This document shows, piece after piece, positions 2,504-41,107 of a stretch of DNA of 64,000 bases. Location of the stretch: the NCBI GenBank assembly GCA_052426225.1, contig JBNJNM010000021.1, positions 2,604,001 through 2,668,000 on the forward strand. Direction: 5' to 3'. The stretch is from Zancudomyces culisetae HAW-14-8. Its lineage: Eukaryota; Fungi; Kickxellomycota. Each line of letters opens with the position of its first letter. Within the stretch, counting starts at the first letter, position 1. The notes beneath the pieces were generated by a model. That model made no database searches and was not told where the DNA came from. It saw nothing but the letters and a program-made list of their open reading frames with translations. The position numbers and the translations under genes were made by a program.

Positions 2504-2802
2504 GATCTCGACACATTTAGACATTAAAAACCATAAGAAAAAAAAAAGATATATAGCAATTAGAAAACATAAGAAAAAACATAAAAAGATAACAAAAAGA
2601 TAACAAAAAAAGTTTTAAAAAACCCAAAAAACATAGTAAAAAGTACCCAAAAGGTCATAAAAAACTCATAAAAAACACGTCTAAACCGAGATTAGTACTG
2701 ATCTCGACACATTTAGTCCAACTGAACATAAATCTAAACCTAAATCTACTAAATTTAACTGACCTTAAATCCAAAAAAACCCTAAGAAACGTCTGCGAAG
2801 AT

Positions 2803-4449: not shown

Positions 4450-4678
4450 CATCCTATTCAAGTAACAGAATTACATCATTATAACAACAACAACACAAAA
4501 AAAAATAACAACAAATATCATAACTGATAAACTACTGGTACTCAACATACCAGAATTGTCTCAGAAAACTGTAAAATATTTTTTTTCGTTCATCACAAAA
4601 ATCGAAAAAAAAAATTTACACGTTAAAAAAATCAAACAGAAAAATAAATCTTACCGTTTCGAAATCCAAAAAATCGAT

Positions 4679-8302: not shown

Positions 8303-8387
8303 GTTTAGATTATAGATTGTTTTTATTTTTAGGAACTGTTTATTTTCTAAATAAATTTTTTTTTCTACCGAAGAAAAAAAAAAAAAA

Positions 8388-9287: not shown

Positions 9288-10212
9288 CCCCATTAAAAAT
9301 ATGCAGCATATTCATTAGTACTGCTTAAAATCTTCTTTCCAATAATTATGGCTTTTTTTAGACGTAGGCATTCTGAGCTCATTATTTGCTAATCTTTGGG
9401 ACTTTACACACATTTTTCAATACACCTATTGAATTTTCTTTCTAATGATTATAGGCATTTCTGGAGTAGCAATAAATTGGTTAATTAAATAGCAAATTAC
9501 CACAAAGTATCTACAGTTAAACCATAAAATAAAACTAATATAAATCAATCAATAATGCTAGTTTGCAAAAAGGGTAATAATTACGTCAACCGTTTCATCA
9601 CTAACTGATGTAGTGCTCTGTTAATCATCGGTTTTCACGTCAATAAAAGGTTTTGCTTAAATTATTTAAAAAGTGGTCCTTATTCACTGTAGCCGGAGCA
9701 ATCCATCTACAATATTTTTCCGAGCAGTTTTGCTTTTACAGTTTATTACATCAAGTTATTTTCTTACACGGTAACAACTGCACCTTCACAATATCCCACA
9801 GGCTAGTCTTATTTATTATAAATGACTAGTAATACTGAACCTGTAGTCACAATAATCTTGTTTATGAAACGTAATATATTTGATAAACACCAATTCCCTA
9901 TAGTTTGCTATATTCTTAGGAACTCGTATTATAAAATGTGGACCGCAAAATTAGCACTTTATAGCTATGAATTGGCCGGGTCTTTGATTTTTGCCGGATA
10001 TTGTTTACCTGTTCTGATGAAATGACCCGTAATGACCCAAATATAATAACAAAATTAAAAAAATAGCAACAGCAAAGTACAGTACATTTCATTTTTTTCC
10101 TAAATATATATAAACTGCAAGGTGTTGAAGGCAAGCTTAAAACAAGAAATTCTCATAACTACCCCTTAAACCGTTTTATCAATAAAAAAAAATAAACTAA
10201 AACAAAACAAAA

Positions 10213-17786: not shown

Positions 17787-18185
17787 ATGGCAAAACCAAT
17801 CAAATCCATAGACATTGTCAAGAAGCGCACAAAGAAGTTTGTACGAGTCCAATCTGACCGTTTTATGCGCGTTGGAGAATCATGGAGAAAGCCAAGAGGT
17901 ATTGACTCACGCACTCGCCGCCGATTCAAGGGAACTCGTCCTCAACCAAAGATCGGTTACGGATCAAACAACAAGACCAAGAACCTATTGCCAAGCGGTT
18001 TCCGTCTGCACACCGTCAACAACGTTAGCGACCTCAAGCCATTGATTATGTTGAACAGAAAGTACTGTGTTGAGATTGCCTCAAGCGTATGCTCACGCAA
18101 GCGTATTGCCATTGTCAACCGCGCTAAAGAGCTCGATATTAATGTAATTAACGCATCTGCCCGTGTCCGCACCGAGGCCAACTAA
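17787..18185 (+). CDS. RPL32: 60S ribosomal protein eL32 (132 aa)
   Basis: KKRTKKFVRVQSDR, WRKPRGIDSRTRRRFKG, PKIGYGSN. AATAAA at 18241-18246. Confidence 0.97.
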   Translation: MAKPIKSIDIVKKRTKKFVRVQSDRFMRVGESWRKPRGIDSRTRRRFKGTRPQPKIGYGSNNKTKNLLPSGFRLHTVNNVSDLKPLIMLNRKYCVEIASSVCSRKRIAIVNRAKELDINVINASARVRTEAN

Positions 18186-18361
18186 ATTTGCACCAATATA
18201 TTACTACTTTTATCGATTTGTGTTTTTTTCGTTGTTTATTAATAAAATGGTCTTATAAATATACCAACACTAATTGTTTTTGATTCTTCGATGTAAATTG
18301 AACGAGTGGCTCAAATATTTATTCTTGTAAATGTATATATTCTATGAAACCAAATGAACAT

Positions 18362-19227
18362 AGCATTCCACAAATGGAGTGGCATGAAAACATGGGTAGC
18401 AGATTTAATACAAAACCCCTTCAAACACTCGAAGGACACTTGGGTCACAGGGTACACAAGGTGGTCTAACAGATTCAACAGGATCAAGATTGATAATGTA
18501 CCAACCGGAGAGATAAGAAAAACTAAGGAGACACTCGAGATAAACAACAGGCTGAAAGACAAGTCGAATATTACAAAGTGGATAAAGGAAGTTGGAGCAG
18601 GCCGACAAAGGAACTGGGTCGACTTACAAGCGGCCTTTCCACAGTACATGAAACACATTCTTTTCGTAGGCCGAATTCGAATAGGTCAATTTTGGACCGC
18701 CACGAGATTAGCAAATTCGGGGTTTATAGATCCAGATTACAAAGCCAAATGTCCGTTCTGTAAGAAAGAAGAAAAAGAAACAGTTGAGCATTACTTATTA
18801 GATTGCAGTAGATGGGACGAAATTAGGAAGGATTTACTTACCGAATTTATAGATTTTTATAGTTCTTTTTTATCTAGCACGATTTCCGAGTGTGTTGAGC
18901 TTCGCAGGAAAATCGTGGGTAAACTCCTGGGGGAGGAGTTAAAGCTCAAACTACCTGGGATTCTTCGGGATCCAAACGCCACTTGCGTTAGAGCAGTGGT
19001 TTCCACAGCCCGGTTTCTTAACGAGACCTTTTTACCTCGCTACCTAGTGTTGAAAGATATTAGTGTAGTCCCACTCCCCTTGAACCAATGCCCATCGGGT
19101 ACGGAGACTCTAGAGAGTCGAAGGGGAATAGGATGAGTTTAGAATATAGATTGTTTTTATTTTCTTTAGGAACTGTTTATCTTCTAAATAAATTCTTTTT
19201 TCTACCGAAAAAAAAAAAAAAAAAAAA
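18362..19227 (+). mobile_element. LINE copy A of array 2, 5'-truncated (~0.87 kb)
   Basis: Matches the element from AGCATTCCACAAATGG. Ends CTACCG + A20. Confidence 0.97.
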
Positions 19228-19713
19228 CAAAGCCAAATGTCCGTTCTGTAAGAAAGAAGAAAAAGAAACAGTTGAGCATTACTTATTAGATTGCAGTAGA
19301 TGGGACGAAATTAGGAAGGATTTACTTACCGAATTTATAGATTTTTATAGTTCTTTTTTATCTAGCACGATTTCCGAGTGTGTTGAGCTTCGCAGGAAAA
19401 TCGCGGGTAAACTCCTGGGGGAGGAGTTAAAGCTCAAACTACCTGGGATTCTTCGGGATCCAAACGCCACTTGCGTTAGAGCAGTGGTTTCCACAGCCCG
19501 GTTTCTTAACGAGACCTTTTTACCTCGCTACCTATTGTTGAAAGACATTAGTGTAGTCCCACTCCCCTTGAACCAATGCCCATCGGGTACGGAGACTCTA
19601 GAGAGTCGAAGGGGGATAGGATGAGTTTAGATTATAGATTGTTTTTATTTTTTTTAGGAACTGTTTATTTTCTAAATAAATTTTTTTTCTACCGAAAAAA
19701 AAAAAAAAAAAAA
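19228..19713 (+). mobile_element. LINE copy B of array 2, 5'-truncated (~0.49 kb)
   Basis: Starts (A)CAAAGCCAAATG after the poly(A). Ends CTACCG + A19. Confidence 0.97.
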
Positions 19714-20187
19714 CAAAGCCAAATGTCCGTTCTGTAAGAAAGAAGAAAAAGAAACAGTTGAGCATTACTTATTAGATTGCAGTAGATGGGACGAAATTAG
19801 GAAGGATTTACTTACTGAATTTATAGATTATTATAGTTCTTTTTTATCTAGCACGATTTCCGAGTGTGTTGAGCTTCGCAGGAAAATCGTGGGTAAACTC
19901 CTGGGGGAGGAGTTAAAGCTCAAACTACCTGGGATTCTTCGGGATCCAAACGCCACTTGCGTTAGAGCAGTGGTTTCCACAGCCCGGTTTCTTAACGAGA
20001 CCTTTTTACCTCGCTACCTAGTGTTGAAAGACATTAGTGTAGTCCCACTCCCCTTGAACCAATGCCCATCGGGTACGGAGACTCTAGAGAGTCGAAGGGG
20101 AATAGGATGAGTTTAGATTATAGATTGTTTTTATTTTTAGGAACTGTTTATTTTCTAAATAAATTTATTTTCTACCGAAAAAAAAAA
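19714..20187 (+). mobile_element. LINE copy C of array 2, 5'-truncated (~0.47 kb), terminal copy
   Basis: Same start (A)CAAAGCCAAATG as copy B. Ends CTACCG + A10, then unique flank CAACATTTTCTC. Confidence 0.97.
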
Positions 20188-20429
20188 CAACATTTTCTCA
20201 CCACTTTAAATATATACCACGCTGCAACTCAATTTGCTTCTAGTATAAATGAATGATTGTGACTTTCTCATCAGTTGTGCACATAAATTATTTTATTATG
20301 AGGATGTATTATACAAGTCTAACAACATGAATTTTGAGATTATGGGATGTAAATGTAAATGTAAATGTAATAAGCCACAAATATGAACTATAAACTTTGC
20401 AATGCAATCAATAAATCTACTCTTTGCAC

Positions 20430-21251
20430 CTAAAAGGCGTACTTTAATCTTTCTTTCTCATATTCCATTAGTTGACTTAGTAGAGAAAAGTTGGGGGAAA
20501 TCCTAGGTGCTCGTGCCTTTACATATTGATATGCCTCATTAAAGCTATATCCCCTAGAGTACATTACGTATGCGATAACTAAGGTTGCAGACCTGGAAAC
20601 ACCCAGTTGACAATGTATTAACACATTTTTCCTATTATCGACTGCCTGGTTTATAAAGTCAAAACACTGCTCGAAGCTTTTTTTAATACAATCTTCGTTG
20701 TGATCCCAAAATATACTCATGTATTCAATTCTATTGTACGTGTCAAAGTTTTTAAAACTATCACCATGCTCTTGACCATACTCGCTATCCGTATCTTCAG
20801 AATAATCCGGAGTTTCTAGCTCATCATGTGAACATATCAACGTAGGACTTATTTCCTTGTAATCATTATAGTTGTAGTTTGTAGTGGATTCTTTAGCCAC
20901 ACTTAGTATTCGCTCAATGCCTAGATGCCGTAATGTTTTTGGATTTGCAGCATCCCTTTCGCTTCCTAAATATATACTATCTACTATCTCTACAGGTCCT
21001 TCTTCTTCATCTATAGCTTTTTCTTCTTTAAACTCGCACCACATTTCATTGTTGTTATAGTCGTTATAGTTATTTTGAAACCCAAACCCACCATTGCAAG
21101 TACTTTTATTCGCATCGTATTGATATTTCTTAGCGTCTCCTACTGTATTTATGGTTAAAATACTAGGTGGTCCCCTTTTCTTCATTTTTTTACTATAGCT
21201 ATTCTTCGTTAAAAAATTGTTACAAGAGCCTAAAGGTGGAAAAATATTCAT
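20430..21251 (-). CDS. Dual-specificity protein phosphatase (MAPK-phosphatase-like, 273 aa)
   Basis: PVEIVDSIYLGSE, catalytic loop HCQLGVSRSAT, ISPNFSLLSQL. Confidence 0.92.
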   Translation of the reverse strand: MNIFPPLGSCNNFLTKNSYSKKMKKRGPPSILTINTVGDAKKYQYDANKSTCNGGFGFQNNYNDYNNNEMWCEFKEEKAIDEEEGPVEIVDSIYLGSERDAANPKTLRHLGIERILSVAKESTTNYNYNDYKEISPTLICSHDELETPDYSEDTDSEYGQEHGDSFKNFDTYNRIEYMSIFWDHNEDCIKKSFEQCFDFINQAVDNRKNVLIHCQLGVSRSATLVIAYVMYSRGYSFNEAYQYVKARAPRISPNFSLLSQLMEYEKERLKYAF

Positions 21252-24249
21252 AATGCCTTGTTTTATTGTTTTTAACCTTTATTTTATTCTCCAAATTGTT
21301 TTTAACCTCGGCAAATCGACGCTATTAATATTTAAACCTTTTTTTATGGCTATTTGCTCTTGTTATAACTTTTTTGGCTAGTCTCCCAACCCTTACCCAC
21401 TCTTACCCTTAATTGTTTACTTTCGTAACTTTAACTTTTTTTTTTTGCTTTTACAAAGACATCTTTATTTTGACTAACCACTTCACTAGTGGTTATTTTT
21501 ACTCTGATTACATCACTTGGGCATTTCGGTATTAACATTTAAAAATAGAAAAAACTTACAGTTTATACGAAGCTCATGATATAATCATGAGACTCGTCGC
21601 TTCCGTTTTTTCTATTATTAGGCTTTTTAAATTGTAATTTAGAATATTATATTATAATTATACCTATATTGCCGAAGTGCGCCGCCTCTTTAGTGCTTTC
21701 AAAAAAAATATATAAGCTCTTGCGTAAAAATTACATTAATTACTAATTATAGAAGTAAATTTAATTGATGCAATTGGGTGTGGTATTTCGTGAGCTATTT
21801 TCATCTTGTGATATTCTATCACATTCGTGTAACGCCGTAATAGCTTTTTAGGAGTTAAAATCAAAAAAAAAATAAGCAGGACAAGTGATTGCACCAATAC
21901 AATCAATAAAAGTGTAATTAATTTATCCCACTAACTAGATTTATTGAAGGAAATTTTTTTTAAAAAAAGTACGTATTTGTAATGTATTGGGAAAGTTTTT
22001 TGAGATATACGTTCATTTTTTGTCATCCCAGATATCTAGTATACAGCCGCATCAAGTATATGTAACTACGTGAATAATTTATTGTTCAATTATTAGTAAA
22101 AAAATCCAAAATGGCAAAAAAATAATTCGATAGGGTTCAACAACACCTTCATACTTGCGGGACTGGAGAGATATATGAGGTAAGATTCAATTAAAATAAA
22201 ATGTTTCTCTAATAATAAAACCGATACCATGTATACTGTGGTAGTACGCTATTACTAAAATTACCGAATACACACCAAGAATCGGTATCAATCCTAACTA
22301 GCCTCCTTGTCATACATGTTTTTTTTTGCTACAAACGTGGATGTTGAAGAGCAATGCTTTCAAAAATTAACCAGCATTTATCTATTTAATTTTAGTACTA
22401 TATACACCGGGTTTTGAATAAAAGTTAGTATAAACCCTCACTTTGGTGGCCTATCATTATATTCTGTAATATTTGACTACCAACGATGAAGGATTAGATT
22501 CATAAGCTGCTCAAAATAATGGTTAGAATAAAGGTAATCATCCCGCTAAAACTCTATACTTGTTGAAAAGACGAATTGCTACTTGTTTTGTTTTGAACGT
22601 TTTAATGTATCTGAAAGCAGATTTGTGTTATTCAATAAAATAAAAATAAATTAACATTCTAATGCGAATCTAAAGTAGTTGATACTAAATATATCAGTTG
22701 TTTTTGAATATTTTTAGCTCTTCAGAAGGCAGCTTTCGCTGGTTTTTAATATGTTTTTTAAGGCTAGTACGTAATCTACCTGTTCTTTATTTACACACCT
22801 TCTCTTTGTACACAATATTGTAATTGAAACTAGAAGTCCAAGCTAAAAATATATAAAAAATTAGCATTGGCTCCATATTAATTATCACCTTCACTATCCA
22901 AATATTTAATATGCCTACTCCGAGGAAATCAGCTACACAATTTTCAAATATATGTACCATTTCATACGTTATTGTGTCAAGCTCAGCTAAATATATGTGT
23001 AGTTCATTAATGGGTTGGAAATATAGATATACGAGCACAGATTAGTGTTTGAGTGTCAGCATTATGACCAATTTATGCATAATCTCCCTGCCTTGAATGT
23101 ATATTTTCAAACTTTCGTAGTCAGAAGACACGTATACCCAAGTATACAATAAATTTGGTTTATATAAGTAGTACTGCACACATATAATTTATAACACTAT
23201 TTTCTATTGCTTTTCATACATGGTGGAATAATGCGAGGGAGTAATGCACCATACTGGACAACTCTGTTCACGCATGCCGATTTTTCATTACTAGATATTA
23301 ATCGCAAAGTTTTTTTTATAGCATCTTGTGTAAGCTAATTGTAAAAACTTACAAAATATATTTACCCAAGACTGAAATAGAAATCGGTATTATACGTATC
23401 CAATGCTACCTATTTATATTTAAAGACATACATGTGTCAGATTAAAGGGTAAGCTTAATTATGTAACCCGTGTTACTAATGTGTACGGGATTGATATTAT
23501 ACTCCTAATTTTTTTCTTGAGATTTGATATGCATTACCCAGTCACTAAATTCAAAATTAGAGCTAATTACTACAATGGTTGTTTTTTTTATTGTAAAGAT
23601 TTGCAGGTTTAATTCTTAATTATGATGGTTCACATGTCACTTCAGCTTAGGATAAATGTTGGATATTATGTGCTATATCTTTCCTTAAATGTAGAATCAA
23701 TTTGATGTATTCATTGAGAATAAATATTATAATTAAAAGATAGATGGGGTCGTTCAAAAGGCATGGGTATAGAGCTAAAGTGAAAAATGCACAAAGCAAA
23801 GCTAGCTCAAAATTTGGGTTAACTTGTAGTGCTGATCCCAACTCAGGCAATATTATGTGTTTAAATATGGCAGCAGGTATTTGTGCGTGTTAGTTAACAA
23901 AATAACTTCTAAAAATATACAGCCTGGTTAGCCAAACGCTTGTAGTATAATATGTATGTTGATTTGAAATTAGTTATCCCATGAGTACAGCGCTGTCAGT
24001 TACATACCTAGAGAATTTATTTTTAGATATATTTGCTAATTCTAAATCTATAAGGCTTATTGGACTTTATTTTTTGTTGAATCAATTTAATATTGCACAT
24101 CATATCTAAAAAATCAGGCAAATATGCAAAGAGGAGCTGATAGGGTTGTCGGTCTTGTTTTATGTTACACGGGGTTTCATATAAACTCAAAAAAAAAAGA
24201 TACTTTGTAGCCATAGCAAAATCCATATTACAAGCTTTCTCCTTCATCT

Positions 24250-24285
24250 CACTATCACTATCACTATCACTATCACTATCACTAT
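24250..24285. repeat. (CACTAT)6 microsatellite
   Basis: Direct reading of the sequence. Confidence 0.9.
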
Positions 24286-24630
24286 ATTTCGTTCTTTTGC
24301 TTTTTTTTAAAAAAAGTAATACATACACATACACACAATTATGGATACACAGGACAAAATAGGTATTATGAACTGGCTGTTGTCTTACTATTCGCAAATT
24401 TTTCTTTACACTCTAGACCAGTTGATTCAATGAGCTTGCTTGTATCATATGTGTCAAGTAGAAATGAAGAATTGCTTAGCCTTACAAAGTTTTTGTGACT
24501 CACTAAACCAAGTACGTATGAGAGGTGCCAACTTAAACTACTTAGCTTTATGTGTATTCACTTGCGTCTAGTTGATGTATAAACTACTGTATTAAACTGC
24601 ATATATTGACATGTGGTCAAAAGGGAAAAC

Positions 24631-24675
24631 TATGAAAATTATGAAAATTATGAAAATTATGAAAATTATGAAAAT
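24631..24675. repeat. (TATGAAAAT)5 minisatellite in the 3' flank of the 748-aa gene
   Basis: Direct reading of the sequence. Confidence 0.9.
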
Positions 24676-24750
24676 TAAAAAATACATAAAACATTAACAA
24701 GGTTATGTAGACAATATGCTCGAAATAATGAGGGCTACCTGCAATTGTAG

Positions 24751-25477
24751 CTAGAGAGGGTAAAACTCCGAACCCTGGTCATTTTGAGAAACCCAATTTG
24801 ATAAGCCAAAGCAAGTAGTGTTTTTTCGAATTATTAAAAGCTTCTTCATGCTTTGGTTAAAGAAAGAACCAGAAGTGGAAATGATATGCGCAACATGGTC
24901 AATATCAAAGTCATCAATGCTGATATCTGATCCTGTTTTAAGCTGATATGACAAAAAGGGCGGGAATGTAGAATAAAAAAAGTAATTGTTGATGTGCTGT
25001 TGTAGGGACAGGTAACTATGGGGATCGTTGTAATCGCAAAGAGAGGATGAGACGGGTTTAAGATAAACTGAAGAGTAAGAATGTGACTTTGAAGACGATA
25101 ATGGCGGAGAAATGAGAGGAGCTGTGTGATTATTCCGGTTTTTTCTTTTAATGGATCGAAAGGAGTGAGATAGTGAAGGCTGGCGAGAGATGGATTTGGG
25201 AAGAGTAGATTTTGCAGTGTTATCCAAGGCAGAACTGATCGCGCTATATTGACGGTTGTGATGAAGTGATAATCGGGTGGCAAAGGAATTTGACGAAGAT
25301 GAGAACTCGGAGCTCACAATGTAGCTCGGGAGTCTCTCAAAAGAATGGAGAATAAAAGTCGAAGGTTGTGAAAAATTTTCTGTTTGGTTTGGATATCGTG
25401 TGAAGCTTTTTTCACCAGAATAAGCTCCAGTGTTGCTTGATGCATCAATAGTGTTTACTTGAGTATATGATGAAGTC

Positions 25478-25509
<32 letters not shown>

Positions 25510-26997
25510 CTCCATTTGTAAAAGAGGCGCATTTGACTTAGATCCAGAGTCACTCACTTCAACATTTTCAGTGGATTTATACCGATCCGAAATACTCTTA
25601 CTGGGACTTTGGTTCTGGTTTAGATTCTGAGTTAGTTTATTATCATTCAGACTAAATACATCACTGTCATCGGTATCACATGCATGTAACCTATCATTAT
25701 TTTCTATGGTGGCTTTTTCTGAGATATTGCAGGATTTTTTTATGATATTGGATTGCAACATGTGTACACTACATGGGTCGGCAATTACAGGTAAAATTGA
25801 ATCGTCAGACGACGAAGCTAGACCATTCTGAGAGTTATTATAGCATTCCAACTCATAACCCATCAATAATGTGTTGCTCGGTGATAACTTTACATTCTCA
25901 CTAGTATTTTTGTATTCATTCCCATTTTCAATTCCAGTACATAATACATTTAAGGTAGTTGTGGCCACAGAACCTTTTTTTTCCTCAAAGGTGGTGTTTA
26001 CATCAAGTATGTTCAACTCGGTGGCCTTAATGCTACTATGTGCTTGTGTGGAACTATTACCGTTCTGAAGCCCATTCATAGTCCTATTTACTCCACCTTC
26101 GTCCTTCAACTCGTAGCTTTCCACCTCATCCGAAACTACCGATAAGCTCTGTATGAAAAGTTGATCTTCATCCTCGTCCTCATCCGTTAACAGTCCAGTA
26201 TTCATCTCGGGTCTATGCTCCAGTGTATGTTGTATTAGCTCATCACTTAAATGATTTCCATTTGTCTTTTTCTGATTTATAGTTGCTTTATCTGAGATGG
26301 TGCTCATAACAATCGAAATATCACTCTTCCTTATTTCTTTTTTCTCACCTCTTCTATTGAACAAAAATTTTCCAAATTTTTTCTTCTCATCTTTGAATAA
26401 ACCACTAGAGCCTTTTGGCTCTTTTTCATCCATTCCAAGAGCAACCACACCCTTCTCTGTGAAACCGTCCAAAGTTTTGTCGCTAATTCTATGCAAATTC
26501 TGTTTAAGGTAGTGGTCATCTTCAGCTCCAGTGCCCTTAACTATACAATACTCTATACTATCTCGAAAACCGTCGACTGAAGGGGGGATTCCTTTTGCTT
26601 TACCCCCCTCTAGCGTTGCACTCGCGTCTCTTAAAAAGCTGCTTTGGTTATTTTGGGAAGCTTTCAACTCTTCTAGGCCTTTATGTGGATTTACATGCTC
26701 TATTCGGGTTTCCATTCTGATGTTATCTTCAACAGGCGCATCGACTTCCACAACCTCTTTGGCTTTCTTAACTACATTTTCTCTTTCACCATGAATATTT
26801 CTTACATCTAAGGTGTTTCTTGGCGCACAATCTATGTCTATATTCCTGCTTTCCAGTACCTGCTTCTTTCCATTTTTAAAGGATACAATAGAAGTTGTAG
26901 CAGCTCTACTTCTATTAAATATCTTTTTAATCAATTTTATGTTTTTTTTTGTGGCAAACCTCGTCCCTTCCTCTGTTCTGTTCTCCAATAAGTTCAT
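24751..26997 (-). CDS. Hypothetical Ser/Asn-rich, largely disordered protein (748 aa)
   Basis: 2.2-kb stop-free ORF in AT-rich DNA with a poly-Asn tract. No domain recognised. Confidence 0.75.
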
Positions 26998-29900
26998 ATT
27001 TCACACGTATTTCCGGGTGTATTGCGTTTTCGAATCATAAAGGTGTGATAAACTTCTTTCTGTTCAAGAATAGGGTTGATAGCGATAATGTGCAATATAT
27101 TTATAGGGTATTGGTGTTATCAAACGTATTTTTTTTTATCACGGAACTTTGACTTGTTCGACTTCTTCTTTGCTTTGTCAATTGTATTATCCCCACTTCC
27201 TGTAATTATTGTGGATACGAGCCTCCTATTGTGTTTATATATAATATAGTATAACAACTAGTGCTAAGTCCTCGGGTGACACATGCTCGTGGTTTTATTG
27301 TTGATATCACCAAGTACTTGGAGCACTCTTCTATCTAATGTTTAGTTTTGTACTTTTAAAGAGCGATTTTGTATTGTGGTGGTGGAAGACTCAAATAAAT
27401 TGATCTCGTCTTAGTTGTCGTTTTTTTTCGTATCTACTGTTTTTTTGGTGTTTAAAATCCAACATGTCTTCTTTTTTGATATAAATAAGTATATTACTAG
27501 AGTAGTGCAGTAAAATGTTGTTGCATTTTATTTCGAAAACTTTTTTCCCGGTTATTTTTTATCCGTTTGTGAATGAAATTTGTGTTACAAAAAAAAGATA
27601 TAAAAAAAACTTATTTCAAATTGGCGTTAGTTTACATCAATAGTTCACAATACATAATTATGATGATGCTCCCGAATTCAACACTGTTTGGGTAACCTGA
27701 ATGTTTTTCACTATTTATTATATAATTTAGGACAATTTATTCAAAATATATTATTATCCTATGTAGTAGGCAAATTTAATAGAGAGCAAGCTATATTTTT
27801 TTTCAACGCTATGTTAAAACAGTAACAACCCTATCAAATTTATAGCATTTACATTTTGCACAACACTAATACCACATCAAAAGTCCCCACAATTCCTAAG
27901 CCATGATATGCATACTGGTTAATTTTTGTCAAATAAAGTCTTGGGTATTAGACTCTTGATGTAAACTGTGGCATTTATTTCAAGTTCAGTAAGTGTATTT
28001 GTATTTTGTTATAAAATGGAACCACTGATCAAAGTGACAATTAAATAATTGAGCTAATGGCCGAATAGCAATAAAAAAAAACAAAGAATAAAATATAGGA
28101 ATGGTAGTAAAAAAGCATTCTCAAAACCACTATATATCACATAAAATGACCTCGCTGTGCTGTTTATTTTTCAAATAAAAGATATACTTGCTAAACAAGA
28201 GAAACGATCAATAGCAGTAAAATGTCAATAAAAACAAAATACCAACTTGACTCTCGCTTTTACCAGTGAATTAACAAACACTAAATAGTTACCAGCAACT
28301 ACCCAACAACACACATTACCTACATACAAACATTACATAAAACACAACATCTTTGCTTTTGTTTTTCATTTGTGATAGCTGTCACTTTTTGCCACAAATA
28401 AATAGCCTTCTCAACCAAATTGCAAAAATACTGAAAATACCAATGGCCGCGCTCAAATTGGGCCATTCCATTTGGCCATGTTGGGATTAATTAAGCACAA
28501 TTTCATTTAGGATTATCGAAATCCAGAAAAAATGTTATTTTTTGTGCATTCTTTTTTGTAAAGCTTCTTTAATTGGTAGTGGATTGGTTCGTTTGATCGG
28601 ATAAATTACAATATTTCTATATCTCTTCCAAAAAAAAAAAAAAACTTGATATATGCAGTATATAAAAAGCAAAGTCTCAATATATTATTGAGCTAATTAG
28701 AAAAATATGTAATAGGTTAAAACACCGACTGTATTCTAACTAGAGGTTATTGAAAAAAAACTAAGCGGGGAAAGCTATTTAATTACAAAGAGTTAGTTGA
28801 GGAGTATCTCGACCATAAACATGTGCAACAATGTTAGTTCAGGACATTCACGTAGATTAATTGAAGATTAGTCACATATTCTCATAAGTATTAAGCAGGT
28901 CTTGACCTAATACTTATTTAGCCATTCAGCTAACACTTTTTTCTGCTAAAAAAATATTTAGCGATCTACGAATCTACGAGTCAAGTACTGGAGAATAGTA
29001 GCATATAATTAATACTACATAATACCATATCATTCAAGGTGAGAGAGACTGAAATGGAGACAATGCTCATTTTGGAAGCAAGTTAGTGTTGATTTGGCTT
29101 GAAGAAATGTTGTTTTATGGTTAATTGCATTTAGCAATTAATATATCAATAGCAAGTGGTGTGAAAAAAAGCATTTTCACTACAAGTGTTGATGAAAAAT
29201 ATACACCAAAATTACAACCATTTAGTTATAATACACTTTAGAATGTCAACTATTATTAAAATCATATATGAGTTTGTGATGGTTGTAAATATACCAGCTC
29301 AGCACCATTACGTAAAAAAAAAGCATAGTTATCCAAAACACTTTGGGTTGAAAACTACTAGTCATAATAAATGAAGATTATACAATCCAGGTGCATAAGC
29401 GGAAGAGCGTATATATATAAAATGTGTATACACTCATAGATGATATGAAACACTTTGATCGGTAAAATAAACACTTTTATAAACTACCACATGAGCAAGT
29501 TGACACGTCAGCACTTGATATTCTGTGTTTTTCAAGTCCTACCCGCCCATATTTAATCTTAGGTATCTAGGCGTTGTAATTAAGCGATTTTTGCCAATCA
29601 CTTTTTTATTGAACTCGCGATTATTTCAGTTGGACAGCAGAGTCGAAGTATGTAACTAAATAGCCCTTTAAAATTAAAATTAAAAGTAAAATAATTTTAC
29701 TACAAAATATTTAACTATAATATATCGAGTCTACATCATACACCCCCACTAAATTCAGGTCACTTCTTATTACAAAAGTTGAATGCCTATATATCTGGTT
29801 GTTTAAGATACCAACAAATGAATAAGGATAAACATGGAGAGCTTCTTGAGTAAAGTTCAACATCCAATAACCACCGGGTACTAGTAAATATGGTATATCA

Positions 29901-31571
29901 GCCAAAATCGTTCATCTCTTTTTGAGAAGGTTCAAAAACTTTTGATAATGACCGTCTGTGATTATTTTTGAAATATAAGTGTCTACAACCAGGTTTATTA
30001 GTTTTTTCTGTTTGTTATTGAGATCACAAACATACACATACACATATACATACATACAATGATATTTTATATGCTTGTGTTTAGGTTCTCTTTTATTGAC
30101 GCAATGTTATTCAATCAAAAGCTAAGTACTAGGATATAAATAGAATAAGCCCATGTTTGAGTAGTCAAATAAAATACATTTGGCAAGCTATTTTAAAAAC
30201 GCTTAGTAGTACGAGAGCGTATATAGTAAAAGTAATAGGTTTTTATTTCAAGATACAATATAAATGGCGAGTTACGAGGTAATTTTTGTTTGTAAATAAC
30301 AAAAAAAACTATCTTTTATGGCTAACGAGCTCAAGTGAAAAAAAAATTAATAAAATATAAAACAAAGAGCACCATATACAAAACACAGGTGTACCTCAAA
30401 GAGTCAGAATTTATAGTCGCAATAAGCTTTCTTATTAGCATTAGGTAGAAATAAAGTATAGCTATTAGCAGTCTCAATGTATAAGTGAACCTTTATGACA
30501 GTGCCGTTTCTCTTCACTTCGATTAAAACCGTTATTCTGCCGCATATAATACTCAATGCATGTTTTATTGGGGCATAGTGGTTTTCAGATCAACACATTG
30601 GTTACTTGTACCACATTTGATAAAACCCTTTTAGTTCCACGTAAATGTTATAGAGGTTATTTTATGATGTTACATCTGCCAATAATTAGCTTTAAACCCA
30701 CGATTTAATAAGTGACAATGACTCTGAAGGAAGATTATTTTGATTTTATCTATGTATAGCCAAACCTGCAAATATCAGAAAAAACAAACAAATATGTGGG
30801 TACATGAATATGAATGTAATACGGATATTATGACATTCGTTTCAAGATATCAATCAAAACACTGACTCTTGTAGGGCTAATAAATCAAGTGTGTAAAGTA
30901 GATTGGCTTTATTGAGAAACAGTAAACATACAATGTGGTTAACCTGTGAATGTATCAAATAGACACATCAATACTGTACTTTTTCCGCTTTTTATGAGTA
31001 GGCACGTGAGACTAGGTCCAACTTCTAACCGATTTACCCCAATCTTGAATTATCCCAGCTTACATAAAAAGCGAGAAAAAAAAGGATTTTGTTCTTGTAA
31101 TCTGAGTAAAGATGACGGAAATTGCGAAAAGCAGATGGAAAAGGCATCTAGCAACAGTCATCAAAGCAATTAAACTAGAGATGGCCCTATCAAACACAAA
31201 TAAATTGCATTTCAAAATACCTCACCATTTTGTATAGAATAAAAAAAGAGCTGACCAACAAAGAGGCAGATACACTGTTGATCAAAAATACCCATCATCC
31301 AATCCCATTCCAGATCCATAAAACTAAACACCATCTAGGATATTTTTTGTATTAGCTCAGGCAGTATTTTGAGATTATGTGTCCTAGTGTTTAGTACACA
31401 CAAAGCTATCAAGGAATGTAATTAAAATATAGAGTTCAGCTAGTGTTTCTATCTTACCAATTCTGTATGTTAAAGAGGGCAAAGAAACTGCCATACACAC
31501 TGTATTAATTGTTATTCTAAGAATATTGTTGTTATACTTAATATATTAATAGTTTTGATAAATACGTGAAA

Positions 31572-33209
31572 ATGGAGATAGAAAAGGAACTCGAGGGCGT
31601 TAACCCAAGTGGGCAATACGAAGGGAGTGTGGAGGTCCATTCGAAATCAAAACTCACAGCCTATGAAGAGGAGGTTGTGAAACGGTATTTAAAAAAAGTA
31701 GATCGTCGCACCCTCCCTATATTGTCTCTGCTATATTTTGGATCGGTACTTGATTCCGCTAATATCGGTGCTGCGCTGGTTGTGGGAATTGTAGACGACA
31801 TTGGACTTTCAAACCTTGAGGTTGCATTATCCATCATTCTTTTCTATTTATGCTATATCCTGTTCGAAGGTCAGTTCAGTATATAGCTTTTCCTTTTCTA
31901 AAAAATATAGTATGAGAAAAGTAACTATACAGAATAATAGTATAAATATATACACAACCATATAGTCCCCTCAAACCTAATGCTAAAGTATTTTAAACCC
32001 CATCACTGGTTTGCATTTATTGCAGTATCGTGGTCAGTCTGCACACTTCTTTTGGTTGTGATAAAAAATGGAACTGGGTTTGTAGCTGTGCGAACTCTTA
32101 TGGGTGCATTGGAGGCAGGATTGAGTCCTGGTGTAGTTACATACTTGCCCTTTTGGTATACACTTGATGAAATCCCAACTAGAATGTTTATGTTCTATAC
32201 GGCCTTGGCACTAACTGGGGTATTTGGACCAGTTATAGCATACGGATTTAGCGAGCTGCCTGTAAGTAGAAATAATTACTAGAGGTATCGGTGTATAAGT
32301 TTAATACCATAACATGTGTATTATTGTTGAAAATAATAGATTCGGTCACTCTTTAAGTATCAAAGAATATTTTTGTTTGAGGGAATATTGACACTGTTGG
32401 TTGGGGTTGGTACATTCTTATTTCTGCATGACTATCCAGAAACTTCTACAATGTTAACAGAAGAGGAGCGCATTCTTGCTACAAAGCGTATTCGTGAATC
32501 ACACGGGTTGGCAACAAAGGCGAAAATCGATTTAAATCAAATAATGAGGGATCTAAAAGATTGGAAACTTATCCCATTTACAACCATGATTTTTAGCATC
32601 AGTTATGCAATCAGCGTAATAGGGATATTTGGACCAACAATCATAAACAACGCGGGCTTTTCTCAAGGAGTATCACTCTTACTCTCTGCACTACCGGCTC
32701 TCACATCTTTTATTATGCTTCTTTTATCTGTTAAACTGATAAAGATCATACCGTTCTATCTATTCGTCACAGTTAATTGCGCTGTTGTGATGATAGCCTA
32801 TATATTTGTGGGCTTTATTGGCGGTCCCATTCTGAAGATAGTTTTTTTAACATTAGGCGGCTTTGGTGGTGTCTCCAACCTGTCAATAATGATGACGTGG
32901 ACATCAATAAACATGGGTGGGACAGCAAAAAGATTGATCTCAATCGCAGTTATATCTGCTCTTGCTTCTGCAGGTAATATGGTTGCACCAATTCTATATA
33001 CTGGAGACTATGGCCCTGAATTTACTGAAGGTGGATTGCTGTTGATCCTATCACATGCAGCTTCGATTGTCAGTGCGTTGGTACTGGCATATCACTTCAA
33101 GCGTACAAATAAATACCGAGACGAACACCCAATCGATGTCTCTCACCTAACCGAGGAAGAACAGGTGGCATTGAATGACTATCATCCCAACTTCAGGTAT
33201 AGACTTTAA
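31572..33209 (+). CDS. MFS transporter, anion:cation symporter (Dal5/Tna1-like); exons 31572-31869, 31966-32261, 32340-33209
   Basis: KVDRRTLP, LDSANIG, FEVPSN restored across intron 1, RIFLFEG, C-terminal HPNFRYRL, multiple TM segments. Confidence 0.9.
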
Positions 33210-33427
33210 TTTCTTAAGAGAAAAGTATTCCTTTTTGTAGCGTTTACGTGTTTCTACCCTTTTGGTGTTAGCAAGTATCAATATTATCAATCAGAGACAT
33301 ACCAAATCTAATGGAGTTATGTATAACTTGGTTGGCTAGCTCAGTATAAAAAACCGTGAATTTGATACAGATAGTTTAAAACATTATAAACATAAAATGA
33401 AATCTGGGCCATTGAGCCTTCACCCCT

Positions 33428-33452
33428 CCCCCCCCCCCCCCCCCCCCCCCCC
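33428..33452. repeat. C25 homopolymer (G25 on the minus strand)
   Basis: Direct reading of the sequence. Confidence 0.9.
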
Positions 33453-36400
33453 AGTGTAAGGTACTTTCACCTTATGTAGTGAATGGGCGTGCGGATAGGA
33501 AGATCAACACGGTTACCAGCATATTGTTTTATTTACATGAGCTGTCTGTGTCTGGATAGGGTTCAAAATATTACACTTTTTTATAGGTACCAATATCCAC
33601 GTTTCAAGGAACCGAAAAGAGGTATTTCGCTAATGTATTAAATTTTAAACAAACAATAGCAAAACAAACAGCTCTGCTGTAAAACTAACAAAACAGGATT
33701 ATATAATTTTTTTAAATGCGAACATTTACAAAATAAAAAAAAGATTATAATAAATGCCAACAAAATCGAGTTATTGAGCCAAGGATGATATGTCGGAATT
33801 CAAAAAACTAAAATAGTGTTAAATTTGATATGGTATATTTCAGTTGAAAATGTACAAAATCATAAAATCAGTAAACACTCTGCGTTTAGAAAGTATATCC
33901 AGGTTAAACATCCAGGGGGTTTTGAAAAGGAGACTTTATAATACTAGTTTACGTGGGGTAAAATATCTTAATTCAGACATAGTCTGTGCAAATAGAAGAT
34001 ATAACACAGAGGCTGAGACTTCGACTCTAAAAAATGAAGAAAATGCAAGTCATAATTTTGTATTTTAGTTTTGTTTTTTTAAACGAGAAGCAGCGCTTTC
34101 TTCTTCCACTCAATATAATTTTTGTTTTGTTATTATAAACATTTGAAAAATGAATATCAATGTCTGTAACTTCAACTATGAATAGAAACTTAAACAACAT
34201 GAAGGAGCAATATTTGTTGGGAACGTCTTTAAGGTGCAACAACACAAACTTGACGTAATTTCACTTGTGGATTCATGGATCAATAAAGAGAAAGTGAGTC
34301 ATATCACAAAAAAAATCAAAGAGCTGGAAGGGGAAGTGGAGATAACTAGGATAGAAGACAGGTAAATATTCCGGTCATATTTTTCTTGAATTAATTACCC
34401 AGCATTACATTAAAAACAGTACATCTGTATATATGTAGATTTCGAGATGGAGGAGCAAGAATATATATCAAATACAAAACCGATGAAGAAACGAGCAAGT
34501 ATGAAGAGAGATTGGTAGAGCGACTACAGAAAAGCGTAGATATAGAGTATAAGGGGGTGGTAAAGAGATATACAAATAGAATACCTCGGGTATTTAGGGT
34601 AAAGGGCGAACCATTTAATGAAGATTTGATGGATTACTTTCCAACACGCAACCTCAAAGTTTCTTTGGGGGGAGGGGTAGAGAACAACGCGAACAAGACA
34701 GTACTCACGGGTGCGGGATTGGAAAAAGTATACAAGGTTTTTAGAGAGTATGGTAGAATATATTCGATAAGAATAGTGGATGGTAACAGCGTGGAGGTGC
34801 GATATGTGTCACCAAAGAGTGCTGCATACGCATTGAATTGTGAGGGGGGTGATATTATCATGGGTATGAACTTATGGATCGTATATGATAAGGTGGCTAA
34901 GAGAAAGATATTTACAGAGTTTTACAATACGCACTCGAAAATCTTGCTGCCGATAATTCTAGCAGCGATAATAGCAGCAGTATTGGCATTGGTGGAGCCA
35001 ATAAGATTGTGGTTTATCAAAAACAAAGTTACCAGAAGAATGGATAGATTAGGGATATATGTGGTAGATAAAGCTAAAGAGCTTGCCAGTATGATGGGGC
35101 TAAAAGTGGGAAAATATGGAATTTATCTGATTGATGCTGTTGGTGGAGCTAGGGGACAAGAGAAGACAGCATTAAGAGAAATCGAGTCAGAAAGTATAGA
35201 AAGGTTGATAAACAAGGTGGAAAAAAATAATAGGCCCAATGAAATAATAGTAATTAGTGGACCTGAGGGCGTAGGAAAGGGTGAATTGGCAAGGTTGGCA
35301 AAAAGAAATAAAAGAAATGTTTTGGAGATTGATATGGGAACATTGGAGCAAATTGCAGGGCTCAACAGTGAAAACTACCAACTAGATGTATTAGCAAGAA
35401 TGGTTGGGTTTATGCCGTTTTTTGGTTCGCTTAGAAGTATACAGGGGTTATTAGACAAGATAATCAGCTCGACTATGGGACAGAAGACGATAGGGCTGTC
35501 AACTTCAGCTTCAGGCCAGGCCAGTCAAATCATGGATGCAGTATTGACAGCACTTGATAGAATTTACACAACCAACTTGTATAACTCTGCTGCTAAGCAT
35601 GCTAAGGCGGTATCGAGGGCGAAAAAAGCCGAAAATAATGGTATGAAATCGTCAGAACTTGACTATAGTGAGGGAAAAGCTGGACATAACGACAGCACTG
35701 AGATTCTTTTGACCAATATTGAGCACGAAATTCCCAACGAGGAGATACCTCTGATAATAATCACCAACTTCATGAACATGTACCCACATTCCAACTTTGG
35801 ATATTACAGAGAAGTGGCAGATTTTTGCAGAAGGGTTGCTGAAACGGGGTTAGCACACATAGTTTTAACCACCACCAACAAGTCAATCTATCGAGATATG
35901 TTGCAACTCTGGTCGCTCGGCAGCACACAGAGTAAAAATGGTAGTGAAAACACTTCAGGAGCAATGGATTCTAGCTCTTTAGGAACCCTTCAGTCAGGAC
36001 TAATTGATGTTATTGCTGTGAAAGAACCTGATCAAAACGATGCTGTTTCGTATGTGACATACAAGCTGGCAACTATCAGTCCAAGCTTGATATTTAATGA
36101 TAATGACAGTCGCGAATTGCTGCGTGCACATATCGACTGTGTATCAAAGATCGGCGTCAACCAAGATGATTTGGATATATATGTCAGTGAAATACTAAGA
36201 GGTGCGGCGCCACTAGCTGCTCTAGAAACTGTGGTTAAAAGAAATGTTATTACGGTGAAACGCATCTTGAATGGTTGCCTTAGCGATGGATCTAAAAATA
36301 GTGGGAATGGTAACGGTAACGGTAACGGGGGTAGTAACAGCGTCAATGCGATTCAGCTGTGGCATATAATTTCGGCTTTTGGATCCCAAGTTAAGCCCGG

Positions 36401-36914
36401 GGACGGCCTTGAGAATGACGGAGGTAATTACAAGCTCAACTACAACAAAGTGATTTCAACCAACTCGCTGTTTGATCCCAGTAAATTTCCCAACATAAAC
36501 AACAGCAGTTTGATCAACTTTCAATCGCAGGGCCTTATAAACGTAGTGTTTGTAGACTCAATACCGACATACTTGACGGCAAGTAGAAAAATTCTTTTGC
36601 TGGCGTTCAAAGCAATCACATCTGAACCCAGTGCTTCGCAGGACTCTTTTATCAAATACGTCAAGACGTTATACTACAAGCAATTAATTGACCTGGAGAC
36701 AGCTAACCTACAAAAACTCAATGCCGAACTGGCTGGGTATGGGATTTTCAACCTCAACGGGGCTACCAGTGTGCCAGGGACAACAGCCCAGGCCAACGCA
36801 CCGGCACCCCGCCAAGGCGGGATCTTCTCAAGTATTCTGTCTTATTTGGGTCTATCATCCCATAGCACTACACGTATCCAGCTACCCACTACTTTCTACG
36901 CCCTATCGTCCCAG

Positions 36915-36931
36915 CATCAACACAGAGTGTT
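36915..36931. repeat. Left TSD CATCAACACAGAGTGTT (17 bp including junction microhomologies); right copy at 40158-40174
   Basis: Exact direct repeat flanking the minus-strand LINE. Confidence 0.96.
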
Positions 36932-39900
36932 TTTTTTTTTTTTCGGTAGAAAAAAAATTTATTTAGAAGATAAACAGTTCCTAAAAAAAATAAAAACAAT
37001 CTATAATCTAAACTCATCCTATCCCCCTTCGACTCTCTAGAGTCTCCGTACCCGATGGGCATTGGTTCAAGGGGAGTGGGACTACACTAATGTCTTTCAA
37101 CAATAGGTAGCGAGGTAAAAAGGTCTCGTTAAGAAACCGGGCTGTGGAAACCACTGCTCTAACGCAAGTGGCGTTTGGATCCCGAAGAATCCCAGGTAGT
37201 TTGAGCTTTAACTCCTCCCCCAGGAGTTTACCCACGATTTTCCTGCGAAGCTCAACACACTCGGAAATCGTGCTAGATAAAAAAGAACTATAAAAATCTA
37301 TAAATTCGGTAAGTAAATCCTTCCTAATTTCGTCCCATCTACTGCAATCTAATAAGTAATGCTCAACTGTTTCTTTTTCTTCTTTCTTACAGAACGGACA
37401 TTTGGCTTTGTAATCTGGATCTATAAAACCCGAATTTGCTAATCTCGTGGCGGTCCAAAATTGACCTATTCGAATTCGACCTACGAAAAGAATGTGTTTC
37501 ATGTACTGCGGAAAGGCCGCTTGTAAGTCGACCCAGTTCCTTTGTCGGCCTGCTCCAACTTCCTTTATCCACTTTGTAATATTCGACTTGTCTTTCAGCC
37601 TGTTGTTTATCTCGAGTGTCTCTTTGGTTTTTCTTACCTCTCCGGTTGGTGCATTGTCAATCTTGATCCTGTTGAATCTGTTAGACCACCTTGTGTACCC
37701 TGTGACCCAAGTGTCCTTCGAGTGTTTGAAGGGGTTCTGTATTAAATCTGCTATCCATGTTTTCATGCCACTCCATTTGTGGAATGCTCTGTCTCTAGCT
37801 CTGGTCGTTCTACTGTAAATATCTGTTATATTTAATTCTTCTCGCAATCTCCTCATGCATGTCGATCTGCCCACTCCCATGGCTATTCTCAATGTGTTGT
37901 CCACGGCTTGCTGTATCGGTTTTACCCTTGCTTCAGACATGCCGAACATTTCACCTCCATAACTAGCGACCGCAATGACTATCGACCTAATTACCATCTT
38001 TTTCATCAACAGCGGTGTATTTCTGTCTTTGAGTAGATAGTAGTTGCTCATGGTTGCTCTTTGTACTTTTTCTTTCCTCTCCTGTATGTGTAGCTTGTTA
38101 TTCCAATATTTATTGAATATAACACCCAAGTATTTATATTCATCTACTTCTGGTACTTTTGCACTTCCCAAAAAGTATTCTGGAATCGTAATTTCAATAT
38201 TATTGTTATTTTCGTCGCTTGTTCTATTCACTGCTTCAACTGTCATAATCGCACTCTTGCTAGCATTCACCTTCATGTCCCACTTCTGACACCATTGCTG
38301 CATCATGTTAAGTGCTTCTTGCATCTGTTCTGGAGTGTCTGACAATAAAACTGTATCGTCTGCAAATAGTAGTCCCGGAATTTTTTCTTGAATCCCTGGC
38401 ACTTCTATTCCCTCCATTCCTTCAAATATATCGTTGATAAAAATATCAAAAAGCATTGGTGAGGCTGGGCATCCTTGGCGAACACCTCTTTCGAAGTTCA
38501 TCGCCTCCGATAATCCATTTCCTACCCTTACTTTTATTTTTGCGTTATTATAGAGTTCTTTAATTACTGCCAGTAATTTACCATTAATTTTGTTCATTTT
38601 TAATTTTTTGAATAATAAATTGTGTTGCACTTTGTCGTAGGCTTTTTCAAAATCAATAAAACAAATTATGGTTTTTGTATTATTGATTTTTCGCCTTTTT
38701 ATAATTTCGTATAGCGCTGTGGCTTGAGCTACGCATTCCTCCAGTGTCCTGAATCCCGCTTGCTCTTTTGCTAATAATATATGTCTATTATCTATTAATC
38801 TTAATTTATTAGCGACTATTTTGGCTATAAGTTTGGTTATGGTTGGGATTAGCGAAATCCCCCTATAATTGTTTGGGTCTTTAGTGTTTCCTTTTTTGAA
38901 AATAGGAACGATTACGCTGGTATTGTTTACACTGTTTAACTTTGGATTATTCCAGAATTTTTTAATTATGGTTAATAAAAGTACTGCAAGTTCCGATTCT
39001 GGATCTTCATCGCTCTGTATAAATTTCCAGATTTCGCTCGGAATGCCATCTTCACCCGCTGCTTTGTTTCTCGGAGTTTCTTTTAGCGCTTCTTTAACTT
39101 CTGTCCATGTTGGTTCTTCGTCGCATTCTCTGAAGTAGTCCACTTCCTCCTCTCTTTCTTCTGGGATTGTGCTTAATGCTGAGTTTTCATTCTTCGATAG
39201 CTTGTAGAAATGTTTTATCCATACTTTGAGTTTTTCTGCCTCCTCTGTTATCTCCCTTCCTGATTCATCCAGGACTCCTCCGTTATTAAACACAGATTTT
39301 TTATTTAGAGCTCTCATTTTTAACCATCTCCACATCGTCTTGGCATCATTGCCTTTGATGTGTTCACATAGTTTCACTAACTCCTTTTTATTATGTAATT
39401 TTTGGTCACTTTTTATTAGCTTTGAAGTTTTAGATTTCATCTGGACGTAATCATTATAAAACAGCTCTTTCTCGTGTTCATCACAAGTTCTGAGCATTTT
39501 TTTGAACAATTTGCAACGAAGTTTGATCATCTTTCGCGTTTTTTTACTTAAAAAATGTTGATTTTTTTTGGCTTCGGAATTTTTTTCGGCCAATTTCTCA
39601 TTATTTTTTGGGTTTGGATTATTTTTTCTTGTCATCTTATCCATCAATTTTTTAGTCTCATTAACGGTTTCACTGATTAGTTCGTCAGTTTCGTTAAGAG
39701 ATGTCAAAATTGAAAATTTATTGTGAGTTCTGAACAGTTCTGATTTTTGGTCCAATAGTTTCCGGTTGACAATTTTTTTTTGCTGCTCTGGTTTAATTTC
39801 CTCAATGGTAAAGTTGGCTGTAATAGCCAGATGATCACTGAGGTCAATTTTTTTGTGTAGTTTTGTTGTCACGAATTGTCCTACTGTGGGGGTATAAAAG

Positions 39901-40157
39901 ATGTGATCGATGGTGTTCTTCAGTCGCTTTTTTGTTATCCTAGTTCCGCTTCGTTTCCTTGTCGGGGCTCTCCTGACTATACACCTGAGTTTTTTCAACC
40001 ATGGTGTGACGATGCTCGTCCTCATGTTGAAGTCTCCGCATAGTATTATTTTTATTTCTCTGTTTCTACCGTATTCTTTGTTTATAAAGTCTTCTACTTC
40101 CTTCTTCATCTGTGTCCTTTCTCTGGGCTTGTGTGGTGTGTGTACATTCACAACCAT
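36932..40157 (-). mobile_element. LINE copy Y, 5'-truncated within the endonuclease domain (~3.2 kb), inserted antisense in YME2
   Basis: ORF2 remnant 37014-40157 is stop-free with an intact RT. Poly(T) 36930-36943 on the + strand. Flanked by a TSD. Confidence 0.97.
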
Positions 40158-40492
40158 CATCAACACAGAGTGTTGTTCTTGCTAGACAAGATCCATGCCA
40201 TCAACAATAAGATTGACAACTATGACGAGCTCGTCAACAGCTTATCGTTTTAACCTAGTTTACATACTACTACCTTTTTTTTATACCGCTAATATGAGGT
40301 ATAAACTGCTACTTTATCTTTATACTTTACAGATATTCTTGTTTGTAACGCGCGAAAAGAGCGCAAACGACTTTGAACAATTAACACTTTTATATTTTCA
40401 AGTGAGAACAGAAAAAAGGATGGAAAGAAAAAAGGGACATTGATAATAGTAAAATTATATCGTAAAGGAAAAAGTTTAAAACATTAGATCCT

Positions 40493-41107
40493 TTAACGGT
40501 AGCGGCGCAGAGACAAGGTGTTGTTACGTTTCCAGGTGGCACGTCTTCCTGAGCCAGCTGTCTTATTGAACAAGTGTCCCTTACCTTTACCTCTGTTCTT
40601 CTTACCGATGGAGGTGAGGGCTCTAGCTTCACGTCTCTTGTGAACTGGATTACAGATCCAGTTGATTCTTGGGTTGCGTCTAATGGCCTTGTGGCTTGGG
40701 TCAACAAGGATTACCTCGTAGTACTTGTAGGTGCTATCTTCGTTAATCCAGTATGAGTTCAATACTCTCAAGTTCTTGCATCTTCTACCAACTCTCTCTT
40801 CGGCGGTGGCTCTCAAAGATCTCTTGTATTTCATTTCGTTGATACCATGGTTGACTGGCTTTCCAAATACTGCTCCCTTCTTAACGGGTCTCTTGCGTCC
40901 TCCTCTGCGGACGCGGATTCTGTAAATTACAAATCCTTGAATGGCCTTGTATCCCAATCTTCTGGCCTTGTCTGGTCTAGATGATCTTGAGGCTCTGTGC
41001 ACTACCTTGCGTTGTCTGTATTCCCAGCAACGAACGCGCAACAAAAAGCGCATAACATCGGATTGCTTCTTCTTTTGAAGTTCTTCGAGGTATTTGTATG
41101 CTCCCAT
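40493..41107 (-). CDS. RPL15: 60S ribosomal protein eL15 (204 aa)
   Basis: [44 protein letters not shown] and TAG acceptor (41124) upstream suggest a 5'-UTR intron. Confidence 0.98.

Follow-up and report, generated by a model that had tools for sequence, protein, structure and literature searches.

The window considered here is a stretch of 64,000 nucleotides (G000:C21:2604001-2668000) from G000, a 27.1 Mb assembly in 25 contigs of Zancudomyces culisetae, an insect-gut fungus of the Harpellales. Its DNA is compact, intron-poor and about 35% GC. The B56 gene product has 98% identity to a protein of that species, and RPL15 has 100% identity to a protein encoded on a contig of an older Illumina assembly of it. 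Self-BLAST reveals one repeat family in the window, a long interspersed nuclear element (LINE) here called family A, with one full-length and eight 5′-truncated copies, all ending in poly(A). The copies occupy three places, the head-to-tail arrays 1 and 2 and a single copy, Y, and ahead of each is a co-oriented ribosomal protein (RP) gene (Table 1). Array 2, each of whose copies has its own tail of A10-A19, starts 172 bp past the stop codon of RPL32 and about 112 bp past the AATAAA of that gene, and copy Y starts 333 bp past the stop codon of RPL15. An earlier note on this DNA had remarked on these two associations and predicted from them that a + strand RP gene, or another highly expressed gene, would be found a few hundred bp before array 1, which runs past the left edge of the window. 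RPS3 (+) is there, its stop codon 298 bp ahead of the start of the array, and 7 kb farther left of this site RPL12 (−) has − strand copies of its own 179 bp behind it.

Copy Y lies within the coding sequence of another gene, RNA12-like, at a target that starts with just two A's, as had also been noticed. It has a target-site duplication of 15–17 bp (36915-36931 and 40158-40174), and the displaced 3′ end of the RNA12-like gene is at 40175-40253. The older Illumina assembly shows the precise site without copy Y, with the RNA12-like gene whole and flanks that are 99.4–99.5% identical. Copy Y is therefore a recent, polymorphic insertion. The remainder of the window, though rich in A-tracts, is free of copies, as first described: outside the LINE copies there are 49.6 kb, with 81 A/T tracts of at least 8 bases and 138 TTAAAA/TTTTAA sites, and none is occupied.

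The long open reading frame (ORF2) of the full-length copy matches the Pfam families Exo_endo_phos (E 5.7e-12), at the N-terminal apurinic/apyrimidinic (AP) endonuclease, and RVT_1 (E 8e-40). Its top match in PDB is human L1 ORF2p (E 1e-25), and among 5.8 billion proteins no relative of more than about 30% identity was found. The endonuclease and reverse transcriptase of ORF2, the poly(A) tail, variable 5′ truncation, target-site duplications and lack of long terminal repeats (LTRs) are those of non-LTR elements of the AP endonuclease (APE), or L1-like, type, and the zf-RVT domain together with an ORF1 of the RRM/CCHC type hints at a place in the L1/Tx1 group. Both ORFs are open in nine of nine full-length copies, and full-length copies from separate RP genes and separate contigs share 99.95–99.98% identity over 6 kb. 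Two insertions are polymorphic, with empty alleles known for those at RPL37 (on G000 contig C12) and at RPL15 (in the Illumina assembly). As judged from its sequence, family A is an autonomous, recently active L1-like non-LTR retrotransposon.

Table 1. Features at the locus and related elements elsewhere (coordinates without a prefix are those of the window)
Feature	Coordinates	Strand	Remarks
Array 1, part in the window	1..9320	+	Head-to-tail; runs past the left window edge; starts at G000:C21:2597104
Array 1, copies in the window	1-1059, 1062-1741, 1741-2481, ~2504-8400, 8383-9320	+	1-1059 is the 3′ part of a copy starting left of the window
Full-length copy	about 2504-8400	+	~5.9 kb, within array 1
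ORF1 of full-length copy	2803..4449	+	548 residues; weak RRM and CCHC zinc-knuckle matches
ORF2 of full-length copy	4556..8302	+	1248 codons; AP endonuclease, reverse transcriptase, zf-RVT (Pfam)
RPL32 (eL32)	17787..18185	+	Single exon; Pfam Ribosomal_L32e, E 2.6e-44; AATAAA at 18241
Array 2	about 18356-20187	+	Three head-to-tail 5′-truncated copies: ~18356-19227, 19228-19713, 19714-20187
RNA12-like host gene	34512..36931	+	Pfam RNA12; severed from its last ~27 codons by copy Y; convergent with RPL15
Copy Y	36930..40157	−	3.2 kb, 5′-truncated; poly(A) tail is poly(T) on the + strand
RPL15 (eL15)	40493..41107	−	Single exon; Ribosomal_L15e, E 2.3e-84
Recombinant element	L001:3677-9435 (G000:C6:2587126-2592884)		756 bp behind RPL37; missing from allelic contig C12
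Family B, examples	L014:5505-5936; C10:1009209-1014808; C9:250144-255741		
Smittium angustum fragment	L053:8900-9150 (MBFU01000021.1)		~200 bp; last 49 ORF2 residues (51% identity, E 1e-9), stop, poly(A)

Copies were located across G000 with a 3′-end 29-mer of the element, and their extents were taken from a search with the full element. The 29-mer marks 68 copies (40 on the + strand and 28 on the −), while its reversed control marks none. These copies form 38 independent places; one more place, on contig C19, duplicates one on C21. Genes were identified in the 1.3–2 kb upstream flanks of the places with Pfam, PDB and NCBIfam, spliced RP genes being searched exon by exon only. Directly ahead of 31 of the 38 places are 31 different cytosolic RP genes, twelve for the small subunit (S3, SA, S5, S7, S8, S14, S15a, S16, S18, S23, S24 and S28) and the others for the large (L4, L7, L7a, L8, L10, L10a, L11, L12, L15, L18a, L23, L24, L27a, L32, L35, L36, L37, L39 and P2). 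Those belonging to universal families match models of the eukaryote/archaeal type, which identifies them as cytosolic. One further place is behind a homologue of the ribosome-bound protein Stm1/Oga1. All 32 of these places are co-oriented with the gene ahead. Between the stop codon and the start of the LINE are 110 to 756 bp, with a median near 260–290 bp, and the insertions are beyond the AATAAA signals. With about 80 RP genes, a zone of 800 bp and one strand, some 0.05 of 38 places would be expected there by chance, versus the 32 observed. The genome-wide mapping that the earlier note had called for thus bears out its proposal of a LINE aimed, by position and in sense orientation, at the zone 3′ of RP genes. 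Four of the remaining six places are old, diverged fragments (75–88% identity), one is at a contig start and one is a true exception, to which we return below.

An origin of these associations in misassembly was considered and is ruled out: the junctions of RPL32 and of RPL8 with the LINE recur in the Illumina assembly, which is independent and has its contig breaks within the LINE repeats, and there are the target-site duplications and the empty sites besides. Mitochondrial RP genes were likewise considered as targets and rejected; neither of the two found, an L3 paralogue (the second L3 hit) and an MRPL44-like gene at 42797-43792, has a copy behind it.

Family A inserts by target-primed reverse transcription behind cytosolic RP genes, into a zone that lies about 110–760 bp past the stop codon and farther out than the poly(A) signal. 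The 5′ end of the element is always toward the RP gene, and the zone is set neither by a DNA motif nor by a nearby small RNA gene. The target-site duplications are of 13–17 bp and lack a common motif; the five clean ones, behind S16, S14, L27a, L15 and L37 (the last set by the empty allele on contig C12), are mutually unrelated. Together with the two insertions for which empty alleles exist, they uphold the claim that position, not sequence, is what counts. AATAAA is the sole enriched k-mer in 25 gap sequences, and a position-specific base count shows an excess of A 14–20 nt ahead of the 5′ junctions, the position expected for the first nick by an endonuclease of L1 type. Exact k-mers and the base count give no other shared motif in gaps or junctions, though a gapped or degenerate one could be missed by them. 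ARAGORN predicts no tRNA gene in the window, and 33 of the 34 loci scanned with it likewise lack one; an Rfam search of flanks, empty sites and window is without hits. Family A accordingly has neither the gene transcribed by RNA polymerase III (Pol III) within about 50–150 bp that marks tRNA-gene-targeted elements, nor the same target sequence at each insertion that marks sequence-specific LINEs. Its confinement to a defined zone and a single orientation at one class of genes, much more often than chance would allow (32 of 38 places, all of them sense), is the mark of the position-specific class. The sense strand of the flanks is T-rich (40% T, 30% A), so that local composition would favour antisense insertion, of which no case is seen.

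Three candidate cues were rejected on these data: a shared DNA motif (beyond AATAAA and the short A-run of the nick, exact k-mers and the base count gave none), a hidden gene for a tRNA or other small RNA (none was found in the ARAGORN and Rfam scans), and attraction to A-tracts as the sole cause, which the many empty tracts and the T-rich sense strand rule out. A-tract attraction is retained for the growth of arrays. The full-length copy of the window has a 14-bp duplication that begins in the poly(A) tail of the copy preceding it, from which it follows that arrays grow by fresh insertion into the tails of residents.

Two features of the copies may be mentioned beside this. Short pieces of internal LINE sequence (element positions ~4660-5620) are found directly 5′ of a same-orientation copy at G000:C21:2597104-2597481, L004:7659-8043, L018:3331-3591, G000:C15:868777-869022 and G000:C23:109950-110156, and suggest template switching as reverse transcription ends. 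In addition, four copies in two arrays (beginning at 19228 and 19714 in the window and at G000:C21:1814960 and 1815446) share a point of 5′ truncation, and three others share a second such point, which suggests that they share microhomology with their poly(A) target or were duplicated in tandem.

Integration of family A is position- and orientation-specific and is probably guided by a feature of RP-gene 3′ ends other than their sequence. Within the zone, the first nick is made at a short A-run on the sense strand and gives rise to the 13–17 bp duplications; once a copy is resident, its poly(A) tail offers a good nick site, and repeated hits there build head-to-tail arrays. A protein or chromatin feature of RP-regulon 3′ ends would hold ORF2p, or else the 3′ portion of the RNA, in a fixed geometry, a tether resembling the way in which Pol III factors hold the elements that target tRNA genes. 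As to what is read, we lean slightly to the view that a mark peculiar to RP-regulon genes at their 3′ ends is recognised by the ORF2 protein.

The earlier note had placed the tether at the termination zones of highly transcribed genes of RNA polymerase II (Pol II), and part of this stands, the insertions being beyond poly(A) signals. The part concerning expression fares less well: no copy is present at either of two EF1-alpha genes, at either of two GAPDH genes, at EF2 or at twelve places of histone-fold genes, which argues that the RP gene class matters more than the level of expression alone. The same observations bear on the explanation that there is no tether to the RP class at all, the element instead reading a generic state at the termination zones of the most transcribed Pol II genes (R-loops or otherwise unwound DNA, paused polymerase, 3′-processing factors or nuclear-pore gating), with RP genes dominating because they are the most transcribed. 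The insertions, past the poly(A) signals and oriented as the gene is transcribed, are in keeping with it, strict orientation would fit a structure coupled to transcription, and the lone non-RP target is a homologue of Stm1, a highly expressed gene in yeasts. However, if high expression of the empty genes is assumed, some 17 straight misses are very unlikely at the rate of about 40% seen for RP genes, and this explanation is an unlikely one.

That the RP association is a trait of family A, and not of LINEs or of the genome layout, follows from a second LINE family, B, which is dispersed over at least 44 places. At several RP genes its copies are found within family A arrays, in the poly(A) tails; elsewhere they are behind non-RP genes (for a GST, an ankyrin-repeat protein, an MFS transporter, an ABC transporter and others). 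At 9 of the 11 places examined family B is co-oriented with the upstream gene, 200–800 bp past the gene end. One family A element, a recombinant, has an ORF2 with 94% DNA identity to the usual one and an ORF1 that is just 26% identical to its usual counterpart; its 5′ untranslated region has 83–88% DNA identity, and its ORF1 34% protein identity, to those of family B. Since this ORF1-swapped element is still behind an RP gene, ORF2 or the 3′ module is the likelier carrier of the targeting determinant, a hint that comes from one element.

Selection is the basis of another explanation, in which insertion is random or driven by A-tracts and only the harmless copies, those behind RP genes, are spared. 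A compact genome has few safe sites, family B copies too are mostly behind co-oriented genes, and the lower limit of the gap, beyond the poly(A) signal, probably does reflect selection. But RP genes are the sites of even the youngest, still polymorphic insertions, one of which interrupts a coding sequence; all 32 places have one orientation despite the T-rich sense strand; family B persists at many non-RP sites; and the window alone has 138 empty canonical sites of the L1 type and 81 empty long A/T tracts. As an account of the whole pattern, selection is highly improbable. A further possibility, that the element really aims at a small RNA gene (Pol III or other) or a conserved motif behind the RP genes, is scarcely credible given the ARAGORN and Rfam results, the want of a common exact k-mer other than AATAAA and of a positional signal other than the A-run at the nick, even though all position- or sequence-specific non-LTR elements known to us work in this way.

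Relatives of the host offer a glimpse of how far guidance to RP genes may extend. One of the two RPL15 genes of Smittium angustum has a same-strand LINE fragment 308 bp behind it (Table 1). In two assemblies of Smittium culicis the contigs with RPL15 end 700–820 bp past the gene, in repeats (L050:8725-9545 and L051:8724-9415) that consist of short units from about 110–190 bp after the RPL15 stop codon; these repeats have no similarity to the LINE proteins. The sequences are suggestive, if thin, evidence that the RP-linked trait reaches Smittium, and it may be old enough to be common to that genus.

Several points weigh against guidance by a feature of RP genes as such. Some 31 of roughly 80 RP genes are occupied, and cytosolic RPL3 has no copy behind it. 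The exception referred to above (L008, at C9:818715) is 95% identical to the element and has no RP gene within 1.8 kb upstream; one place begins at a contig end, and one internal fragment is outside the examined set. The continuity of the long arrays behind RPL10 and RPSA comes from coordinates alone. RP specificity is not fully separable from extreme transcription, the ORF1-swapped element and the Smittium angustum fragment are each a single case, and Pfam, run on ORF1 and ORF2 outside their catalytic parts, gave nothing credible as a tether domain.

The nearest counterparts of family A are TRE5-A and TRE3 of Dictyostelium, which also are APE-type non-LTR elements of a compact genome, have a specificity of position and orientation, not of DNA sequence, at a gene class that serves as a safe haven, and have clustered copies. 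They are at Pol III tRNA genes, however, through Pol III transcription factors, whereas family A is at the 3′ ends of Pol II RP genes, has no tRNA gene nearby and uses a wider window of distances (110–756 bp). R1, R2, the Tx1 group (Keno, Mutsu), TRAS/SART and NeSL/CRE are non-LTR elements that likewise keep to one class of host locus, often in arrays. Those sequence-specific LINEs recognise a conserved sequence in multicopy genes or repeats; family A is at 31 different single-copy genes, with unrelated duplications. To our knowledge, the known cases of position specificity among non-LTR elements all involve repeated RNA genes or repeats.

Tethered LTR elements share the proposed logic, in which a protein of the element binds a host chromatin or transcription factor and integration takes place beside it. 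Ty1 and Ty3 integrate at Pol III genes, Ty5 at heterochromatin and Tf1 at Pol II promoters, and the host partners are Pol III factors for Ty3 (as for TRE5), Sir4 for Ty5 and Sap1 for Tf1. Unlike family A, an endonuclease/reverse transcriptase LINE at gene 3′ ends in strict orientation, these elements are integrase-based and go to promoters or silent chromatin. Mammalian L1 has in common with family A an ORF2 with AP endonuclease and reverse transcriptase, poly(A), frequent 5′ truncation, duplications of 13–17 bp and the nick at an A-run. L1 is dispersed and its sites are chosen mainly by the sequence preference of the endonuclease, whereas family A ignores hundreds of such sites outside RP flanks. 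Family A is thus a new target class and geometry within the known position-specific retrotransposons. Neither full-text searches of the literature nor the paper on the HiFi genome assembly (PMC12611240) gave a report of retroelements aimed at RP genes or at Pol II terminators.

Homing behind some thirty single-copy RP genes without a sequence cue implies that RP 3′ ends share a recognisable feature and that a LINE protein has evolved to read it. If this is true, family A would be the first known case of a retrotransposon that seeks out one class of protein-coding Pol II genes, on the terminator side and in a single orientation, and RP genes would carry a distinctive and so far undescribed state of chromatin or termination at their 3′ ends. 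The long-standing question of what marks the RP regulon beyond its promoters then becomes testable, and the dispersed family B on the one hand and the ORF1-swapped but still RP-linked recombinant on the other provide a natural contrast for mapping the determinant. Integration beside very active genes is here a natural safe harbour, from which the design of integration tools may profit. Termination of the RP genes, and the genes next to them, may be affected by the arrays as well, the truncated RNA12-like gene being one neighbour that is hit directly.

Some further observations concern the host genome. Many genes and LINE places in G000 are doubled at 99–100% identity (contig C19 versus C21, and C12 and C10 versus C6), a sign, it seems, of haplotypes that are partly separated or of large duplications; the doubled contigs expose insertion polymorphisms. 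A gene for a predicted secreted protein of 245–248 residues is present in three copies (L011:7391-8137, L022:2019-2756 and L023:7273-8010), each beside old LINE fragments, in what looks like a segmental duplication that took the fragments along. Within the window, an intact ORF of 352 residues at 10462-11520 (+) has matches to both domains of NamZ, a bacterial exo-beta-N-acetylmuramidase (E 1e-57 and 8e-44), which is unexpected for a fungal genome and makes it a candidate for horizontal transfer.

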